This document shows positions 5,988-61,057 of a DNA stretch of 64,000 bases, piece after piece. Positions within the stretch are counted from its first letter, which is position 1; every line of letters starts with the position of its first letter. A program made the translations under genes and the position numbers. Location: the sequence record LT598654.1; one strand, 5' to 3'. The notes under the pieces are model-generated. The model was given only the letters and a program-made list of their open reading frames with translations. It searched no databases and was not told where the DNA came from.

Positions 5988-8260
5988 TGAAACGCATTCG
6001 TAAAAAATCAAAAGAAGTGGAGGCTGAGGTCTCCACTAAACCAAAAAAGAAAATCAAAAGAGTACGTAGACGAACAAGTAAACCTGAGAAATCCGAACAA
6101 CCTTCAAAAGTACATCCTATAGCTGCGGCTGTTTCTACCAAAAGTCCCCTCGACGAACTCCTATCTCTTTCCGACGAAGAAGTAACCCACGCAGAAAATC
6201 TCGACTTCCTAGAAAATCTTTCAATGGACTACAACCCTCTTGATGATGGAGAAGGTGTAGATATTGTCGGAATGGTTGATGAAGCTATCAACCAAGATAC
6301 GCTTGTTGCACCTGATTTGAAGATTGATGATTCTAGCTGCCCGGAAGCACCTAATGTTTTCGAATGGTTGATGGGTGATAAGTTCTTAGGTTGCGAACCT
6401 CCTTATCTTGAACAGGCACTTGTTTGTATACAATTGTTTGCTGAGTACTGCCCTCGCTGTAGTGACACTGAGTGGATGCACATAGACAATCACGAACCTC
6501 AAGAAGGTGTCGGTGCTATATACGACAAAGTTGTGTGTACCCATTTCGGTGTTTGTCCTAAGTGCGGTGCTGAAAGAAGCGAGTTAATTCAAAACGGTGA
6601 ACTTAACTTCTACAATGAACTTGCTATGTTGGCAGGTCAGCGTAGCGGTAAGTCGATTGTTACCGCTATGGCATCTACGTACATCACTCACCGTATCCTT
6701 AAAATGCAAAAGCCTACTGATATTTATAAAGTAGGTAAGGGGCAGATACTTCACGGTACTTTCGTTGCACTTACACAGGGCCAGGCTAAAGACACTCTGT
6801 GGGAACCCTACTACGGCTACCTGTTAGAGAGTCCCTGGTTTAAAAAGTATCACGCACTGCTACGCTTCTACGAGAAGAAGTACCAACAAGACTTCTTCAA
6901 GTTAAAAGATACGTTTGTTTTATACAGACACCGTGGACTCAGTGTTTATCCTGCTGGTCCCGATAAGCGGGTACTTCGTGGTCGTACTCGTATATTCGGC
7001 GCAATAGATGAAATCGGTTGGTTCGATAACAACAAAAACTCCGACAAGGTTAAAATTAACGCAGAAGAAGTTTATGTTGCTATGGTACGTTCACTTGCTA
7101 CAGTACGTTCAAGTGAGGAACGTTTAGTAGGTATCGGATACAACCAGGCTATATCTGCTTACATGCTCAACATCAGTTCACCTTCTAGTGTACGTGATAA
7201 AATCTGTGAGCTAGTAAGGCAGTCCCAAGGTTCTACCAAGACATTAGGTGTACACGCACCTACTTGGAAGATGAATCCAAACATAACTCGTAATACTGCG
7301 TTCTTGGTAGAAGAATTCCGCAAAGACCCTATTACTGCAATGCGAGATTACGGAGCAGAACCTCCGTTGAGTGCTAACGCATTCATAAACAACAAGCAGT
7401 GGATACAGGATATTTTCAACGACAAGTACCGTAACATTATCAGCTACACTAGCAGGATAACTAAAGTCGGGAAAGAACAGTATCGATATGCGGAAGTCAA
7501 CAAAGTTAAACCTTCTAACCAGTACAGCATAATGGCTATCGATGCCGGTTACACAAATAACTCGTTTGCGCTGGTTGTAGGTACTATAGGTTCAGACGGT
7601 GTTCCTAAAATGGATCTTGTAGCAGAAGTAATTCCTTTACCTGGTATTCCTTTAAACTACACCATGATATATGAGGAATTAATGCGTCCTATTATAGAGG
7701 CGCGTAACGTCCGAATCGTACTTGCTGACCGATGGAACAGTCTAAAGCTATTGCATGATATAGCTATCGACTATATGGATGTTGAACTGGTTACCAAGCA
7801 GTACTCTTTGAAGTATCCTGATTTTTGGAACATCAAGACTACTATTGAACAAACAATGCTTACCATCCCTAACTTAGAGAAGGGTCATGACCTCGATGGT
7901 GTGTTAAAAGATACACTCGAAGAATATCCTCGTTGCTTTGAAGGTAGACCTGCGTGTCACTTAGCCTTACAGATATTAACTGTACAGGATACAGGACGAA
8001 CTGTTACTAAAGGTGAAGGTGACCTAACAGATGATTTGTGGAGAGCAATGGTCCTAGCGTTCTGGGGTATGCAACAAGATGAATTCGTAGACGTTCTCTT
8101 GACTGATATGGCACCTCAAGATAAACCACGTGTTGCTGCACTGGGAACCGCGTTACTTGGTTCAGCGGGTGGTGGTCAACTGTCAAGTGTAGGAGGCTCT
8201 AGCGGCGCTAAGTCTACCGGGTCAGGTGGTGTAGTAGGATTACTAGCAGGGAGAAAATAA
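5987..8260 (+). CDS. terminase large subunit
   Basis: Walker A AGQRSGKS, LRG motif, Walker B FGAIDEIG, ISSP coupling motif, nuclease AIDAG and late DDL; near the portal. Confidence 0.9.
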   Translation: MKRIRKKSKEVEAEVSTKPKKKIKRVRRRTSKPEKSEQPSKVHPIAAAVSTKSPLDELLSLSDEEVTHAENLDFLENLSMDYNPLDDGEGVDIVGMVDEAINQDTLVAPDLKIDDSSCPEAPNVFEWLMGDKFLGCEPPYLEQALVCIQLFAEYCPRCSDTEWMHIDNHEPQEGVGAIYDKVVCTHFGVCPKCGAERSELIQNGELNFYNELAMLAGQRSGKSIVTAMASTYITHRILKMQKPTDIYKVGKGQILHGTFVALTQGQAKDTLWEPYYGYLLESPWFKKYHALLRFYEKKYQQDFFKLKDTFVLYRHRGLSVYPAGPDKRVLRGRTRIFGAIDEIGWFDNNKNSDKVKINAEEVYVAMVRSLATVRSSEERLVGIGYNQAISAYMLNISSPSSVRDKICELVRQSQGSTKTLGVHAPTWKMNPNITRNTAFLVEEFRKDPITAMRDYGAEPPLSANAFINNKQWIQDIFNDKYRNIISYTSRITKVGKEQYRYAEVNKVKPSNQYSIMAIDAGYTNNSFALVVGTIGSDGVPKMDLVAEVIPLPGIPLNYTMIYEELMRPIIEARNVRIVLADRWNSLKLLHDIAIDYMDVELVTKQYSLKYPDFWNIKTTIEQTMLTIPNLEKGHDLDGVLKDTLEEYPRCFEGRPACHLALQILTVQDTGRTVTKGEGDLTDDLWRAMVLAFWGMQQDEFVDVLLTDMAPQDKPRVAALGTALLGSAGGGQLSSVGGSSGAKSTGSGGVVGLLAGRK

Positions 8261-54783: not shown

Positions 54784-55303
54784 CGAATCAACAGGCTTAG
54801 CTAAAATTCAAGACCGGGCACGTAACCGAGTAAGAGAAGTATTTGCAGAAGTCTTCACTGACCAAGAACTTGACCAAATGCTTAAAGCAGAAATCGAGGC
54901 GTTCTTTAAGAAACCTGCCGAGAAGATGAACCTGGTGAAGGTTAATCATCGTGCGTATCAAGGTCACGGTCAACCTGAAAAGTATGTAACCGAAGCAACC
55001 GAAGTAAAACTGTCTCCATTCCAATTGATTGTTTGGCAGTTCTGTTCTCAGCAGGTGTTGGATATGTTGACTAAGAACATGGAGCAACCTGAGTTCACTG
55101 CACGAGATACTTTCCTAACCCTGCAAAATGCAGACGGTTCCCTCTCAAACTTTATGGTCACTGAACTTGGTGAAGAACTGCAAAAACGTTCCGAGAATAT
55201 GGCTAAAGAAAACATGCACCTGATGTTTGCTCAAATGTTTGCCGGGATGTTCAAGCAAAGCAAAGACGAAATGATGATAGAATTCTCCCAGCGTTTTGGT
55301 TGA
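54773..55303 (+). CDS. hypothetical protein
   Basis: ATG at 54773 with GGAG SD within ORF 54695-55303. Confidence 0.75.
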   Translation: MDNSESTGLAKIQDRARNRVREVFAEVFTDQELDQMLKAEIEAFFKKPAEKMNLVKVNHRAYQGHGQPEKYVTEATEVKLSPFQLIVWQFCSQQVLDMLTKNMEQPEFTARDTFLTLQNADGSLSNFMVTELGEELQKRSENMAKENMHLMFAQMFAGMFKQSKDEMMIEFSQRFG

Positions 55304-55328
55304 TCTCGTTTTGTGTCTTCCTAGAATC

Positions 55329-55426
55329 GGCATTTCCTTGCGTAGATTAGAGGTTTGTCGCAGAAAAATGCCATTAATCTCGTATTATACTAAAGTATAA
55401 GGTACTCTTTGTAATTTTAAAGAGTA
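55329..55426. other. structured intergenic region with three inverted repeats
   Basis: ggcattt/aaatgcc long imperfect stem; ttatact-aa-agtataa; tactcttt-N8-aaagagta. Confidence 0.7.
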
Positions 55427-55443
55427 ACTACTGGGGTATAAAT

Positions 55444-56346
55444 ATGGAAATCGATTCATTTTTGGAGAACACTTTAGGATTCGAGGTGCGCACTGGTCGC
55501 CCTGTATCTAAAGTCGTATCCTTTTTACCAAGTGGTTACGGTGACGAGTATGTACTAGGAAAATGGCATATCCATTTACTAGATAGAGTCACACAAGACG
55601 GTCTACAAAAGCTGGGAGTCAAGATTGAAATAAATAGCCTTGACCACCATCACGTTGTTGTTTACTGGGGTTACGTTAAGTACGATGTTAGCGAATTTAA
55701 AAAGCTGTTGCATTCGTGTACTGATATTTTCGACCATGCCGAAGATGACGTTCTCTGTGAACGGGTAGTCCTAAACTACTCAGACCAATTGTTCCATAAC
55801 AGTGCATTCATATCTGAATACAACATTTGGCACTTCGACGACTTGTTATCTTCGTATGTGCCGGACGGATTCAATGTGTTGGTACCTGATGATATTGCAG
55901 AAGAAACAAGTATTGATTTAATAAACGAGTTTCTTTTTGATATGGACGGACCGAGTGTTTCATCTAACTCCTTTGATATGATTCCTAGATTCCCTGAAAG
56001 TTTTACGGAGCATTTTAACGAGGTAGGCGTAAACGTTCTTGATGTTAACTCAGAAGGTAGGCTTTTTATAAGCAAGAACTTTGTTAAAGAAAAGACGTTG
56101 CGTTTAAAAACAATGAACCAGGTATTCATTGTACGTTTAGCTCTAAAAGCTCTTAGGGATAATAGAGTACCACAAGCTGTGAAATTTCTAAAAGAGGTAG
56201 GTTTGGTAAAAGATATTGTCATACTAAAAGACATACACAACCAAACCAGAATTTCGTTTTTAAATGATACTTGGGATGACGTTGAGGTATTTGGAGATTT
56301 TGATGAAATGTTATTGCACGTAAATAAAACTTACGGCAACTTATGA
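55444..56346 (+). CDS. hypothetical protein
   Basis: 300-aa AT-rich ORF. Confidence 0.75.
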   Translation: MEIDSFLENTLGFEVRTGRPVSKVVSFLPSGYGDEYVLGKWHIHLLDRVTQDGLQKLGVKIEINSLDHHHVVVYWGYVKYDVSEFKKLLHSCTDIFDHAEDDVLCERVVLNYSDQLFHNSAFISEYNIWHFDDLLSSYVPDGFNVLVPDDIAEETSIDLINEFLFDMDGPSVSSNSFDMIPRFPESFTEHFNEVGVNVLDVNSEGRLFISKNFVKEKTLRLKTMNQVFIVRLALKALRDNRVPQAVKFLKEVGLVKDIVILKDIHNQTRISFLNDTWDDVEVFGDFDEMLLHVNKTYGNL

Positions 56347-56597
56347 TAACCAATGAAGATATTTGTAGAATTAATGCGTGTCTACGAAAGCAGTTCTCAA
56401 AAGCAGATTTAGTTCTGCACTCGCATAGTCTCCGCCAAGATTACAAAGCGGATAATTTGGATTTCGTTGAATTAGCAATGTCCCTAGAGGAGGAATTTAA
56501 GGTAGATATTGACGATGATGTATTTTTTAATCTTGAAAGCATAGAGGACTTATACAACTTTATCAGTACCTTACTGGAGAATACTTCTAAGTATTAA
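56343..56597 (+). CDS. acyl-carrier-protein-like, phosphopantetheine Ser replaced by Asn
   Basis: KADNLDFVELAMSLEEEFKVDIDD versus canonical GADSLDTVELVMALEEEF. Confidence 0.85.
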   Translation: MITNEDICRINACLRKQFSKADLVLHSHSLRQDYKADNLDFVELAMSLEEEFKVDIDDDVFFNLESIEDLYNFISTLLENTSKY

Positions 56598-56615
56598 AAC
56601 TGTAAACTGTAAGCA
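56598..56615 (+). promoter_or_regulatory. conserved motif AACTGTAAACT followed by a partial repeat TGTAAGCA
   Basis: intergenic copy upstream of ATG 56638. Confidence 0.5.
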
Positions 56616-56637
56616 TAACTACCTTACAGGAATCGGT

Positions 56638-57015
56638 ATGAATACTTTGGACTTACTTCAAACTTACGATAAATATCTCGTAAAACTTCAAAATTCAATT
56701 TCCCAACCAGAACAAGTCCTCTGGCAAGCACTAGAGGACTTCGCCCTTCCAAAGACTTCTTTCCTTAATATCCTGGACGTATACGATTTAGTGGAACACT
56801 CAGTACGCAGTGCCAAGCTAGAGTCGCATCTGATTAACTCAACCTATGAGCTTATTAATCGCCTTCGTGTGGAATTCAATGGTACAATATCACTACTTGC
56901 GGTCAGTGACTTCGTCCAGTGCCTTCAAAACTTTTCAGATACGCAAAACATTCCCAAGCGTATAGACCTAATCGTGAGACAGTTAAGAAATGACCTCGTT
57001 AAAGCAGTCTGTTAA
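56638..57015 (+). CDS. hypothetical helical protein
   Basis: 125-aa ORF, AGGA SD. Confidence 0.7.
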   Translation: MNTLDLLQTYDKYLVKLQNSISQPEQVLWQALEDFALPKTSFLNILDVYDLVEHSVRSAKLESHLINSTYELINRLRVEFNGTISLLAVSDFVQCLQNFSDTQNIPKRIDLIVRQLRNDLVKAVC

Positions 57016-57104
57016 AATTTTCTTTGCTTGTACTTTTATATTTATGGTACTTGCAATTTTCTACGTAGGCTACCACGTAGCTTGCTACATTAGGAAGATA
57101 AAAA

Positions 57105-57929
57105 ATGCTGAGTAACTATCCCTTATTAGCAATAAGCTTTATGAGCCAAGCTTTTGAAATGGCTGCGTTGAGTAGTGCGCGTCGTCGAAAAACGGGTGCA
57201 GGTGTTTACCGTCAGTTAGAAGGTAAATATTTTCAACCTGTATCCAACGGAATTAATGGAACCCGAACAGGTACACCTAACTATTGTGAGAACATGGACG
57301 GCACAAGCAGAGGTCGTAAAGTAATACATGCCGAACAGAACTGTCTTATTAAAATGATGACAACAGGTGTCGCTACTGAGGGCTGCACTCTGGTCACTAC
57401 CTTCGTTCCCTGTGAGGTGTGCTGCGAGTCTATCATCGATGCCAAAATTCGCGAGGTAGTCTACTGTGAAGACAGCATTAACGAAAGCAAGAAAGCTTCT
57501 ATAGGTAAACTAGAAGAAGTAGGTATTCGAGTACACCGCGTTACCAAACATGAAGTAATTGAATACAAGATGATGGTTCTTGATGGTCTTCGCACAGGAA
57601 ATAAATTTCTAGGTGAGCCTGTTGAGCAGGAGTACCATGACTTTGCTAACCATATAAGAGCACTTACCTCAGAGCAGGTGGAACTGGTCAAGAAGAACAT
57701 AGAGAACACCATTCACCAACGTAACTATTCTCCTACTAAAACGTTTGCGTTAGATACAAACATTATCGAACTCTCTCAGGTAACTAACAGTGAAGACCTG
57801 TTGAAATGGATTGAAGACAGCTACGACTATCTTATGGAGATAGAGCACCGAGTAAGTACAACCCATCCAATGATGCGTATATCAACCTCGTTGCCTGAGT
57901 TGTTGACGTATTACGTAAAAATCAAATAA
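57105..57929 (+). CDS. dCMP deaminase family protein with C-terminal extension
   Basis: NG...G..N.CE, HAEQN and PCEVC Zn motifs. Confidence 0.88.
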   Translation: MLSNYPLLAISFMSQAFEMAALSSARRRKTGAGVYRQLEGKYFQPVSNGINGTRTGTPNYCENMDGTSRGRKVIHAEQNCLIKMMTTGVATEGCTLVTTFVPCEVCCESIIDAKIREVVYCEDSINESKKASIGKLEEVGIRVHRVTKHEVIEYKMMVLDGLRTGNKFLGEPVEQEYHDFANHIRALTSEQVELVKKNIENTIHQRNYSPTKTFALDTNIIELSQVTNSEDLLKWIEDSYDYLMEIEHRVSTTHPMMRISTSLPELLTYYVKIK

Positions 57930-57938
57930 CTGTAAATA
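57928..57938 (+). promoter_or_regulatory. conserved motif AACTGTAAATA
   Basis: overlaps the deaminase stop, just upstream of the ACP gene. Confidence 0.5.
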
Positions 57939-57944
57939 GAGGTT

Positions 57945-58193
57945 ATGATGAACAACATTGATGAAGCCTGTGCAAAAGTAGTAGAGTCTGTGCTACAGAT
58001 ACCTGCTACTCTTATTGATAAAGAAAAGTCTCTTGCGGATATGTCTTGCGATAGCCTAGACCTTCTGCAAATGGTAATAGAGTTCGAAGAAGAACTTGGG
58101 ATTGACTTGGATGAACGCGAGTTTACATCCAACTTTTTAACTCAAAAATATTCACAAGCAGTGGAAGAGTTAAAAGCAAAAATTAAGGAATAA
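57945..58193 (+). CDS. acyl carrier protein
   Basis: DSLD motif with Ser, then MVIEFEEELGIDLD. Confidence 0.85.
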   Translation: MMNNIDEACAKVVESVLQIPATLIDKEKSLADMSCDSLDLLQMVIEFEEELGIDLDEREFTSNFLTQKYSQAVEELKAKIKE

Positions 58194-58195
58194 GT

Positions 58196-58462
58196 GTGTC
58201 AAGAGTAAGTCTGTACTTGGTATTAAGAACATACCGTAACTATTATAATGTTCAACCAGGTGATTACATCATCAAGATGCCATGCGGTTTATGTTACAAA
58301 GTTGAAACTATGGATAACATAGATGAAAGCAGTTTGAAGCTAACGGTGTCCAACAAGAGTCCTGCTCTTTTGATGACCAACATTAAGTCTACTTACATTA
58401 GAAACCAATCTGTTGATATTGAAATCAACGGTGATATTACAGAGGTAAAAGCCAGTGCTTGA
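58196..58462 (+). CDS. hypothetical protein
   Basis: 88-aa ORF, GTG start. Confidence 0.6.
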   Translation: MSRVSLYLVLRTYRNYYNVQPGDYIIKMPCGLCYKVETMDNIDESSLKLTVSNKSPALLMTNIKSTYIRNQSVDIEINGDITEVKASA

Positions 58463-58874
58463 AATGAAACCTTACCTGTTAAATGCGGTATACCGTTTTA
58501 TCGCAGACAAGGGAGAGATCCCTTTTATGACAGTTGTTGCAGATGAACGCTGCACACTGCCTATGGAGTTTGCGAAAGACGTAAGACTTCCTAACGATGA
58601 CATTGTTAAGGCAATTACGCTCAATCTTAGCATGAACGCTACCAAGAATTTAAGTATACCAGAAGACGGTCACTACTTGACATTCGGTGCTACGTTCGGA
58701 GGTCGCCACATGGATGTAGTTGTACCTTACGATTGCATCTTGCACATGTATCCTAAGGGTAAGATTGATCAGGGTATTGGTTTTGAATACATCGAACCCG
58801 AAGATTCGCAAATTCCGACCGAACCTGAATCTAAGCCAGCGACCAAAAAGCCAACACTCTCTGTAGTTAAGTAA
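58455..58874 (+). CDS. sspB: ClpXP adaptor SspB homologue
   Basis: PYLLNAVYRFI, ITLNLS.NAT..L, F.A.FGG, VPY..I, and C-terminal LSVVK ClpX-binding tail. Confidence 0.92.
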   Translation: MLEMKPYLLNAVYRFIADKGEIPFMTVVADERCTLPMEFAKDVRLPNDDIVKAITLNLSMNATKNLSIPEDGHYLTFGATFGGRHMDVVVPYDCILHMYPKGKIDQGIGFEYIEPEDSQIPTEPESKPATKKPTLSVVK

Positions 58875-58882
58875 ATGTAGTT

Positions 58883-59239
58883 ATGTCTTTGTTTTACCCG
58901 ACACCAAAGAAAGACTACATAGTATGCGTAGCTACTAATAATACCCACATGTTGCCTACTGGACAGTTCTTCTACTTGAAGATGAAACAAAACAAGGTAG
59001 GCAACTTTGCAATTCAAGATGGTCATTGCTGCTGGGTACTTGGTAAAGAGTTCGATATGGAAGGTGTTAAGTACGTCCATCTAACTGCGAAGTTAGAGCT
59101 TGATGATCCTATTCCAGAAGAACAGATTGAAAGTTTAAGCATTAGCGAAATATTAAAAACATACGGAATTGAAGGTATTGGTTTGGAAGTAAGCTTGATG
59201 CGTAAAGTAGAAAGCCTTTGTGCAAACCGAAACACCTGA
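58883..59239 (+). CDS. hypothetical protein
   Basis: 118-aa ORF. Confidence 0.7.
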   Translation: MSLFYPTPKKDYIVCVATNNTHMLPTGQFFYLKMKQNKVGNFAIQDGHCCWVLGKEFDMEGVKYVHLTAKLELDDPIPEEQIESLSISEILKTYGIEGIGLEVSLMRKVESLCANRNT

Positions 59240-59257
59240 TTACCGTATTGAGGATTT

Positions 59258-59629
59258 ATGAAAGAACTTATTAGTTATAAGTATCAAGGCTTCGTAGAAC
59301 GTGTTGTTGATGGTGACACGTTTGACATTCGTATTGACTTAGGTTTCTATACGACAACAACGCAGCGCATTCGCTTAGCCGAGATCGATACACCCGAAAC
59401 GTATCGTCCAAAAACAGAAGCCGAGCGCACACATGGTCAGAAAGCAACTGACTTTGTTACGCGCATGATTGAAAACAAGCAGGTATTTGTCGAAAGCGTT
59501 AAGCGCGGTAAGTATCGGTTTGTAGCAAAAATCTCATATCAAGACCCTGACACCAAAGCGTGGATTGACTTAGGCACTAAGTTGAAGAAAGAGGGATTGG
59601 TAAAACTCGATTCTTATCCAGAGGACTAA
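59258..59629 (+). CDS. thermonuclease (SNase-like)
   Basis: RVVDGDT, RIRLAEIDTPE, G.KA, KYR motifs; no signal peptide. Confidence 0.9.
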   Translation: MKELISYKYQGFVERVVDGDTFDIRIDLGFYTTTTQRIRLAEIDTPETYRPKTEAERTHGQKATDFVTRMIENKQVFVESVKRGKYRFVAKISYQDPDTKAWIDLGTKLKKEGLVKLDSYPED

Positions 59630-59641
59630 AGGAAATAACTC

Positions 59642-61057
59642 ATGTTACCAACTGAACATACAATCAAATGTGATGATTTCGGTACACATACAGAAGAAAA
59701 CGGACGTTTAATCCTGTTCTTCTTTAATGCAGACCGTGAAGCAGTATTGAAAATCCGCAAAGGCGATTATGTGACTATCAAAGGCAGTGTTCGCTATGAA
59801 GACTCAGAATCAGTATTCAATGCAGAGCACTCGGGTGTAGTTACTGACATTGATGCTGGTCCAGGTTACCCATACAACCCGGGTGGTATTGTTAAAATAG
59901 TTCAGACCATCATCAAACAAAGCGATAACTTCAATTCTGCTGATTACCAGTATCTGTACTGGGTTCGTCAGATTCTTGAACGCGGTCGCGGTAGTGAAAA
60001 CCGCACAGCCACCAACACACGCAAGTTGTTCGGTGAAGCGCAAATGCACTTCGATTTACGTAAAGGTTTCCCGTTGTTAACTACCAAAAAGGTTAATACG
60101 GGTGCTATCACTAAAGAACTGTTGTGGTTTAATCGGGGCGAGACCAATATCAAAACACTCGGTTCAAAGATTTGGGACGAGTGGGCTACAGAAGACGGTG
60201 AACTTGGTCCTGTATATGGTGCTCAGTGGCGTAACTGGAGTGCTTGGCATGAAGTATCAAGAAACGATCAGGCACGTATCGACTTCTTGAAAGAGCAAGG
60301 TTATACCGAACAGTATTCTACCGATTGGCACGTAATGCTGTCTAAACGTATCGACCAAATCGATAACCTGATTAACGAACTAAAGACGAATCCAAACAAC
60401 CGTCGTATGTTAATCACTGCATGGAATCCTGCTGCTGACCCTGACACCAAATACAGTCCGAAACAGAATGCGGCTTTCGGTATGCAAGCACTTCCGCCCT
60501 GTCATACTATGTGGCAGGTAGGTTGTACTGAAATGAATAGCGAAGAACGTTTCGAAGCTATTATCCATGATAAAGCACTTGAGATTATGGCTAACGTTGA
60601 CCGTCTGCGTACTTACGACCGTTGCCGAAGTGAAGCACTAACCGAAATTGAATTGCTACAAGATAGCTACTACACAACAAGCGGTGACCATTCACTCGAA
60701 GGTTTCTTGGATAGTATCAATGCTCCTGAGTTCTTCCTTGACTTGAAACTGTATCAACGTTCGGCAGACTGGTTCTTGGGTGTACCTTTTAATATCGCAA
60801 GCTATGCTGAACAGGCTCTATTACTTGCTAAGCACTGTAACCTGGTTGCGCGTGATTTCTATCATACGTTTGGTGACTTCCATATTTATGATAACCACGT
60901 TGAACAATTGCAAGAGCAGTTAAAACAACCAATGCAAGGTACTCCGTATATGCGGATAGCTAAACGTCGTGCAATCATTAGTGATTATCGACCAGAAGAT
61001 TTCCAATTACTTAACTACAACCCAGGTATCGTGCTGAAAGGCGACGTTGCTGTTTAA
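59642..61057 (+). CDS. thyA: thymidylate synthase with N-terminal extension
   Basis: NRTATNT, FPLLTTKK, GPVYG.QWR, PPCH, YQRSADWFLGVPFNIASY, HIYDNH. Confidence 0.95.
   Translation: MLPTEHTIKCDDFGTHTEENGRLILFFFNADREAVLKIRKGDYVTIKGSVRYEDSESVFNAEHSGVVTDIDAGPGYPYNPGGIVKIVQTIIKQSDNFNSADYQYLYWVRQILERGRGSENRTATNTRKLFGEAQMHFDLRKGFPLLTTKKVNTGAITKELLWFNRGETNIKTLGSKIWDEWATEDGELGPVYGAQWRNWSAWHEVSRNDQARIDFLKEQGYTEQYSTDWHVMLSKRIDQIDNLINELKTNPNNRRMLITAWNPAADPDTKYSPKQNAAFGMQALPPCHTMWQVGCTEMNSEERFEAIIHDKALEIMANVDRLRTYDRCRSEALTEIELLQDSYYTTSGDHSLEGFLDSINAPEFFLDLKLYQRSADWFLGVPFNIASYAEQALLLAKHCNLVARDFYHTFGDFHIYDNHVEQLQEQLKQPMQGTPYMRIAKRRAIISDYRPEDFQLLNYNPGIVLKGDVAV

Follow-up and report, generated by a model that had tools for sequence, protein, structure and literature searches.

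Can a phage keep a protein that has the fold of an acyl carrier protein (ACP) and lacks the serine to which the phosphopantetheine (Ppant) arm is attached, and what would such a protein do? The question arises from a stretch of 64,000 nucleotides (nt), referred to here as the window, of sequence record LT598654.1 of Phage NCTB, a circular genome of 257,877 bp that originates from surface water. NCTB has been called 'Trichodesmium phage NCTB' and is placed in the 'Lupandier' group of jumbo phages together with Lu11 and PaBG (PMC7412058). Positions given below are those of the window, to which 62,000 is added to obtain record coordinates, and region 55400-59700 is 100% identical to the record. 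Exactly two open reading frames (ORFs) with a PP-binding domain are present in the whole NCTB genome, and we named them ACP1 (84 amino acids, aa) and ACP2 (82 aa); the gene that ends on the start codon of ACP1 was named orf300 (all coordinates are collected in the table). A preliminary description of the window had presented the two as a pair made up of one modifiable ACP and one pseudo-ACP with Asn in place of Ser. Both ORFs are as it stated, with Asn38 in ACP1 and Ser37 in ACP2; the pairing itself is not conserved, as ACP2 was found in the NCTB species only. The analysis presented here indicates that ACP1 probably represents an old, conserved Ser-less ACP-fold family of NCTB-like marine jumbo phages, a binding-only adaptor whose most likely partner is the orf300 protein.

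ACP1 scores 34.6 bits against the PP-binding family PF00550, for which the Pfam gathering cutoff is 20.8 bits, and PHROG 5934 'acyl carrier protein' is the best PHROG match for both ACP1 and ACP2. Solved ACPs in the PDB match ACP1 with a best E value of 5e-9, and in these alignments Asn38 of ACP1 stands opposite the Ser of the D-S-L-D motif. The AlphaFold model of ACP1, built from 70 homologues, has a predicted local distance difference test score (pLDDT) of 82.7 and shows helices at residues 4-18, 38-52, 58-62 and 67-82. In a Foldseek search with this model the top matches were all ACPs, with ACPs of the fatty acid synthase (FAS)/type II kind at template modelling (TM) scores of 0.75-0.85 and root-mean-square deviations of 1.4-1.9 Å; by this modelling ACP1 is confidently assigned the four-helix ACP fold. 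Neither protein reaches the level of an AcpP equivalog, the best NCBIfam scores being 48.2 (ACP1) and 29.5 bits (ACP2) where the cutoffs are 66-106 bits (TIGR00517 / NF002148-51). The preliminary description had drawn attention to a near-perfect helix II in ACP1, and indeed its segment ADNLDFVELAMSLEEEF agrees with the consensus ADSLDxVELxMxLEEEF at all consensus positions but the Ser. The Ser within D-S-L that characterizes a holo-ACP is absent, residue 38 being Asn, and from its sequence ACP1 is not modifiable at the canonical site. The protein is acidic, with an isoelectric point (pI) of 4.3.

A first concern was whether the Asn codon is genuine, and the same description had asked for a recent mutation or sequencing error to be excluded. 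In the Tara, ZHEN20, JGI and Logan assemblies, at least 24 contigs encode proteins 98-99% identical to ACP1, and all of these proteins carry Asn. Nucleotide differences between these strains and the window number 2-5 inside ACP1, and none of them falls in the AAT codon. Three DNA runs from three other studies gave contigs with a word depth of ~17-18 that differ from the window at 127-129 positions over 2.9 kb, with zero differences at 56454-56456. Sequencing error and recent mutation can both be dismissed as the origin of Asn38. The gene itself is missing from the GenBank annotation: the record is empty at 118347-119104 (window 56347-57104), which hides both ACP1 and a further ORF, orf125, whereas metagenome gene calls on the same DNA contain both. 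Our analysis corrects this omission.

Relatives of ACP1 were then collected beyond the NCTB species. An exhaustive HMMER search with ACP1 revealed a gap in identity, with no relatives between 95% and 46%, and Ser is missing in ~15% of its best matches. Word-indexed searches returned species-level variants, P0035 and P0166 only; scans of IMG/VR with ACP1, with orf300 and with an ACP1/P0035 alignment gave zero matches; and of the two metagenome scans the first gave nothing and the second, which used a three-lineage alignment, gave loci L025 and L026. Among these relatives L014/L015 and P0035 belong to one lineage, and lineage 3 comprises L023/L025 and L026 together with P0008. Where we speak of four lineages in alignments, NCTB, L014, L025 and L026 are meant, the last two both lying within lineage 3.

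The Ser-less gene occupies the same place in all of them. P0035 (motif DDLD) is encoded on Tara contigs of 182-257 kb in perfect synteny with NCTB, the order being a 310-aa orf300 homologue, the ACP-like gene, which overlaps it by 4 nt, a 125-aa ORF, dCMP deaminase, an orf88 homologue, an SspB-like gene, an orf118 homologue, SNase and ThyA. P0008 (DELD) lies directly 3' of a 301-aa orf300 homologue, likewise with a 4-nt overlap, and on the ~243-kb contigs of L025 (DELD) and L026 (DDLD) the order is orf300, ACP-like gene, deaminase, orf88-like and SspB-like. Both P0035 and P0008 carry a precomputed PF00550 assignment. The orf300/ACP junction reads TTATGA in all lineages, and the codon at the attachment site is AAT, GAT, GAA and GAC in NCTB, L014, L025 and L026, i.e., Asn, Asp, Glu and Asp. 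None of the orthologues has Ser, and the pseudo-ACP claim, which hung on homologues not all bearing Ser, thus stands on this point.

Between lineages the ACP-like proteins are 34-43% identical in pairwise comparison, and their genes are saturated at synonymous sites. Between L025 and L026, the ratio of non-synonymous to synonymous substitution rates (dN/dS) was 0.165 in the ACP-like gene, as compared with 0.134 in the deaminase gene and 0.075 in both orf300 and SspB. Since the orthologues read N/D/E/D, synteny is kept and dN/dS is low, the Ser-less state can be regarded as ancestral and selected: on these alignments it was in place before at least three lineages diverged, and the ACP-like gene is kept by purifying selection. 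A tree of ACP1 with its 120 nearest homologues was poorly resolved, and the orthology of the Ser-less genes therefore rests on synteny. Ser-less proteins are scattered over this tree (14 changes, compared with 16.2 in shuffles), a placement that suggests repeated independent losses of the Ser, and a single large Ser-less clade received no support from it.

The pattern of conservation points to the surface by which ACPs are recognized. Over the four lineages 17 residues are invariant, and 11 of these 17 fall in positions 33-49, covering the end of loop I and helix II. Residues D37, D40, E43 and E49 of ACP1 correspond to acidic positions that are near-invariant in canonical ACPs too, and partners dock through such positions, as D35 and D38 of the Escherichia coli ACP touch arginines of IscS (PMC13343975). 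As judged from the alignment, the acidic helix II, i.e., the ACP docking face, is the best-conserved part of the ACP1 family. The residues found at the attachment site itself may have a simple structural reason. Asn and Asp are, like Ser, favourable N-cap residues for a helix, and the N/D/E spectrum could be tolerated because such residues can still cap helix II, so that phosphate mimicry is not needed to account for it.

If ACP1 acts by binding, its genomic companion is the first place to look for a partner. Homologues of orf300 with 40-43% identity lie directly 5' of the Ser-less ACP gene, with a 4-nt overlap, in L014/L015, L023/L025 and L026, the P0008-linked homologue being 41-43% identical to the other two, and dN/dS of orf300 is 0.035-0.075. 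The two genes are never separated among the lineages while their flanks vary: upstream, the relatives have an extra gene of 88 or 184 aa, and downstream, orf125 and ACP2 are present or absent. It is mainly because the pair stays together in changing surroundings that orf300 is favoured as the candidate partner, and in our reading of these genomes the conserved coupling speaks for a partner within the phage no less than for a decoy of host proteins. A scan of genome contigs with orf300 found no bacterial or archaeal copy and hence no pointer to a host or an origin. The protein has roughly the length of rIIB and is nevertheless not rIIB-like, as it has no PHROG rIIB match and reaches a probability of 1% in hhalign against T4 rIIB, and rIIB (phrog_609) has no match in NCTB or Lu11. 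Prediction of an orf300-ACP1 complex gave a score of 0.00, meaning that no answer was returned, and counts neither way. The AlphaFold2 model of orf300 (pLDDT 55.6), with weak PC4/Pur-alpha-like matches of its N-terminal domain at E ~0.1, was not used as evidence, and an McbB match in NCBIfam (E 0.0014), seen in only one orf300 orthologue, was disregarded.

Taken together, ACP1 would be a small acidic protein that does nothing but bind other proteins, whether as a subunit, an adaptor or a regulator, with the co-translated orf300 protein as its most likely partner, in the setting of what appears to be an early nucleotide-metabolism operon (dCMP deaminase, SspB-like protein, SNase and ThyA). Its role may be akin to that of the Plasmodium mitochondrial ACP, a cofactor-less structural partner of Isd11-Nfs1. 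Of the proposal in the preliminary description that ACP1 is a non-modifiable ACP mimic, the fold, the loss of Ser and the conservation are borne out, and the binding-only role is our interpretation of them.

Several observations weigh against a dedicated complex of ACP1 with the orf300 protein. No match to orf300 was found in Pfam, PHROG, NCBIfam, PADLOC or the PDB, and thus it has no recognizable function. ATGA overlaps of 4 nt are frequent between neighbouring genes in this phage and in this operon, so that coupling taken by itself says little about a physical complex. Lu11 gp353 contains a Ser-less ACP-like domain without an adjacent orf300 homologue, which means that the fold may not need orf300 in order to act. 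The changes seen in ACP1 within the NCTB species, 2 synonymous and 2-3 non-synonymous, are uninformative on selection. The only RNA-library run that covers the locus is probably the source sample, in which RNA and DNA are inseparable, and transcription cannot be demonstrated from it.

A rather unlikely alternative, though the strongest of those considered, is that ACP1 is a host-directed decoy which mimics apo- or holo-ACP at host sites (e.g., FAS or PlsB-type enzymes, a MukB-like structural maintenance of chromosomes protein, SpoT or IscS) and rewires or blocks them, with orf300 unrelated or merely co-regulated. In favour of it, the helix II docking face is conserved and nearly identical to the ACP consensus, and Lu11 retains a Ser-less ACP domain without orf300. 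The ATPase of MukB is stimulated equally by apo- and holo-AcpP (PMC8602292), and apo-ACP has been reported to be a potent inhibitor of E. coli growth (Keating et al. 1995, as cited in PMC13343975). Other partners, however, require Ser36 or the Ppant arm, and S36T abolishes binding to IscS (PMC13343975). Moreover, the identity of 34-43% between lineages outside helix II represents more divergence than expected for a mimic that tracks one highly conserved host AcpP, no named host target is favoured by the data, and the conserved coupling to a phage gene is left unexplained, which is where binding to the orf300 protein has the advantage. One could also imagine an inhibitor- or immunity-type pair, in which orf300 is a harmful or timing-dependent enzyme that ACP1, as its cognate partner, inhibits or chaperones. 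A coupled gene for an acidic protein of ~80 aa (pI 4.3) that follows a larger gene, the two being kept as a pair, recalls small acidic immunity proteins and antitoxins, and the invariant polar residues C105-E106-R107, D132-D133 and H190 of orf300 could be catalytic. As orf300 has no recognizable nuclease or toxin fold, and as this arrangement is a special case of an ACP1-orf300 partnership, not a distinct observation, we regard it as improbable.

The remaining two explanations concern the attachment site itself. Cargo might be carried without a Ppant arm, either on Cys13 or on the Asn, Asp or Glu side chain. Cys13, in helix I (window 56379-56381), is specific to the family and invariant in all Ser-less orthologues and lineages, at a column in which Ile, Leu or Val is usual for canonical ACPs and only 2 of 64 have Cys. 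This column nevertheless belongs to the buried core of helix I in ACPs, where the simplest reading of a Cys is as one hydrophobic residue in place of another; there is no acylation chemistry common to Asn, Asp and Glu, and the phage encodes no loading enzyme, all of which makes an alternative carrier highly improbable. As to artefact or decay, meaning an error in sequencing or a duplicate of ACP2, inactivated recently, that drifts to loss, AAT is one transition away from AGT, and the changes in ACP1 within the species are too few to reveal selection. With AAT retained in the contigs and independent DNA runs described above, with the orthologues of diverged lineages lacking Ser under purifying selection, and with ACP2, not ACP1, being the copy that is missing from relatives, we count this explanation as refuted.

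Comparison with known ACPs helps to place the ACP1 family. ACP1 shares with AcpP of type II FAS (PF00550) the fold (TM 0.75-0.85), the length, the acidity, a near-identical helix II and the docking residues D37, D40, E43 and E49. Unlike ACP1, AcpP has the Ser, the Ppant arm and the carriage of acyl groups, and ACP1 lies in a phage nucleotide-metabolism operon without FAS genes. The preliminary description had noted that neither a phosphopantetheinyl transferase (PPTase) nor fatty-acid enzymes are encoded nearby, and this extends to the entire phage: a genome-wide domain search of NCTB found no ACPS-family PPTase, AMP-binding enzyme, ketosynthase, PlsC-type acyltransferase or short-chain dehydrogenase/reductase.

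A closer parallel is provided by the mitochondrial ACP (mACP) of Plasmodium falciparum, in which Phe replaces the Ser and which is an essential, Ppant-free structural subunit of Isd11-Nfs1 (PMC8547962); the same authors report no Ser-less ACPs outside Apicomplexa and chromerids. Both proteins have lost the Ser and are kept under selection in a compartment or genome that lacks FAS enzymes and PPTase, and the combination of Ser loss, purifying selection and absence of FAS/PPTase genes from the phage is found in full in the ACP1 family. We see in this a functional analogy to the apicomplexan mACP, not common descent. The P. falciparum protein is eukaryotic and organellar, has a hydrophobic Phe at the site and binds a LYR-type partner, whereas ACP1 is viral and its family carries polar or acidic N/D/E; a Pfam search among the neighbouring proteins gave no match to Complex1_LYR (LYR motif). 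In the literature, the apicomplexan mitochondrial ACP was the only published functional Ppant-free ACP found, and for phage ACPs we found annotations only and no functional work. A phage-conserved ACP without the attachment Ser is thus a new viral counterpart, the ACP fold itself and the Ppant-free mACP being already known. It widens the concept of a Ppant-free ACP beyond apicomplexan mitochondria, with the fold presumably serving as a docking module in the ACP1 family.

Annotated phage ACPs (PHROG 5934) resemble ACP1 and ACP2 in being small ACP domains, stand-alone or fused, in large phages. Those of phiRSL1 (ORF083), Motura, Vibrio phages P018-4 and 10AMN, and MT838883 all have D-S-L-D and are in this respect similar to ACP2 and unlike ACP1. 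PaBG, AD1 and Yoloswag have no PP-binding ORF, and so the trait is not group-wide. Lu11, also a 'Lupandier' phage (PMC7412058) and cultured on Pseudomonas putida, has gp353 (NC_017972.1 262034-262456, minus strand; locus L031 3535-3957), a protein of 140 aa with a 65-aa N-terminal extension and the C-terminal end VDDLDRIEMVLALEEEF. Its ACP-like domain is Ser-less (D-D-L-D), and no other Lu11 protein matches ACP1 better (E 4e-8). The protein differs from ACP1 in the N-terminal extension, in its gene neighbourhood and in the lack of an adjacent orf300 homologue, and orthology between the two is not established.

Similar proteins turned up in other settings. Locus L017, an unrelated phage contig with DNA pol A and gp32, encodes at 6001-6231 a 76-aa ACP-like protein with D-E-L-D, tightly packed between a PDDEXK nuclease and a dUTPase-like gene, which makes it a further Ser-less ACP within a module of DNA metabolism. 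On the bacterial contig L016 (5413-5655), a stand-alone D-N-L-D ACP lies 3' of yceD and beside rpiB, roughly in the usual place of the acpP region. Vibrio phages P018-4 and vB_VibM_10AMN (L019 2974-3534 and L020 2941-3504) encode 186-aa proteins, annotated as hypothetical, in which an N-terminal Ser-bearing ACP is fused to an uncharacterized C-terminal domain of ~100 aa.

ACP is among the most connected bacterial proteins, and phage 'ACP' genes are routinely filed as auxiliary genes of lipid metabolism. For the ACP1 family that reading would be wrong, because the family is conserved over deep divergence yet unable to carry acyl groups. It is tempting to speculate, although we hold it to be rather unlikely, that Ser-less ACP folds are a recurrent phage device, namely proteins for host takeover or adaptors that tie into the ACP network or imitate the way it docks, with no lipid chemistry involved, of which the orf300/ACP pair, Lu11 gp353 and the DELD protein of L017 would be independent cases. 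Two experimental handles are at hand: the orphan orf300 as the candidate partner, and the cultured phage Lu11 with its P. putida host for genetics of a Ser-less ACP domain.

Table. Features of the orf300-ACP1 locus of Phage NCTB and genes downstream of it, in window coordinates.
Feature	Position	Strand	Description
orf300	55444..56346	+	Orphan 300-aa protein; TGA stop overlaps the ATG of ACP1 (ATGA); proposed partner of ACP1
ACP1	56343..56597	+	84-aa protein with predicted ACP fold, D-N-L-D, without the phosphopantetheine Ser; unannotated in GenBank
Asn38 codon (AAT)	56454..56456	+	Site of the phosphopantetheinylated Ser; residue 1 of helix II
orf125	56638..57015	+	Unannotated 125-aa ORF between ACP1 and the deaminase; lineage-variable, membership in the module uncertain
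dCMP deaminase	57105..57929	+	With C-terminal extension; PF00383 (E 4.8e-14), phrog_174; downstream neighbour of orf300/ACP1, syntenic in all lineages
ACP2	57945..58193	+	82-aa ACP with intact D-S-L-D; Ser37 = AGC at 58053-58055; NCTB-specific

In ACP2, the Ser of a holo-ACP is in place, and the protein scores 32.4 bits against PF00550. Among strains it shows 6 synonymous and 0 non-synonymous changes (P ~7e-5 under neutrality). Searches of the word-indexed database and of the phage collection gave no homologue of ACP2 beyond the NCTB species cluster, and at the syntenic position, the only locus inspected for this, the gene is missing in L014, L025 and L026. Its C-terminal helix IV has diverged, and the protein forms a long branch in the tree. 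Since ACP2 is confined to NCTB while ACP1 is kept in the relatives, the two do not form a conserved unit; from these comparisons ACP2 is a separate, lineage-specific, Ser-bearing addition under strong purifying selection within the species, and the Ser-less ACP1 is the core gene. Loading of ACP2 would depend on a PPTase of the host (AcpS). The suggestion made at the outset that ACP2 diverts acyl flux found nothing in its favour but the intact Ser.

As for orf125, the 16-17 synonymous against 2-3 non-synonymous changes among strains mark it as a real gene by selection. L014 has a 125-aa ORF at the same position with no detectable similarity to it, and L025 and L026 are without such an ORF there. 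A 41-aa ORF with a strongly hydrophobic core (56990-57115, plus strand), which may encode a small membrane protein, overlaps the last part of orf125 and lies just 5' of the deaminase gene. Promoter-like sites occur at the chance rate in 55000-59000, and no terminators were found in that interval. The repeat AACTGTAAA, present 3' of ACP1 and 3' of the deaminase gene, has 4 matches where 1.6 are expected, which is not significant. PADLOC-DB models gave no match for ACP1, ACP2, orf300, orf125 or their neighbours.

Further downstream, 58455-58874 (plus strand) encodes an SspB-like protein, i.e., a homologue of a ClpXP adaptor, in the same operon in all four lineages, which could redirect host proteolysis. 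The thymidylate synthase homologue at 59642-61057 (plus strand) is 471 aa long, is extended at its N-terminus by ~100 aa and has a Pfam match that is split. Between NCTB and L014, ThyA is 82% and SNase 83% identical, compared with ~40% for neighbouring genes, suggesting either unusually strong conservation or recent exchange.

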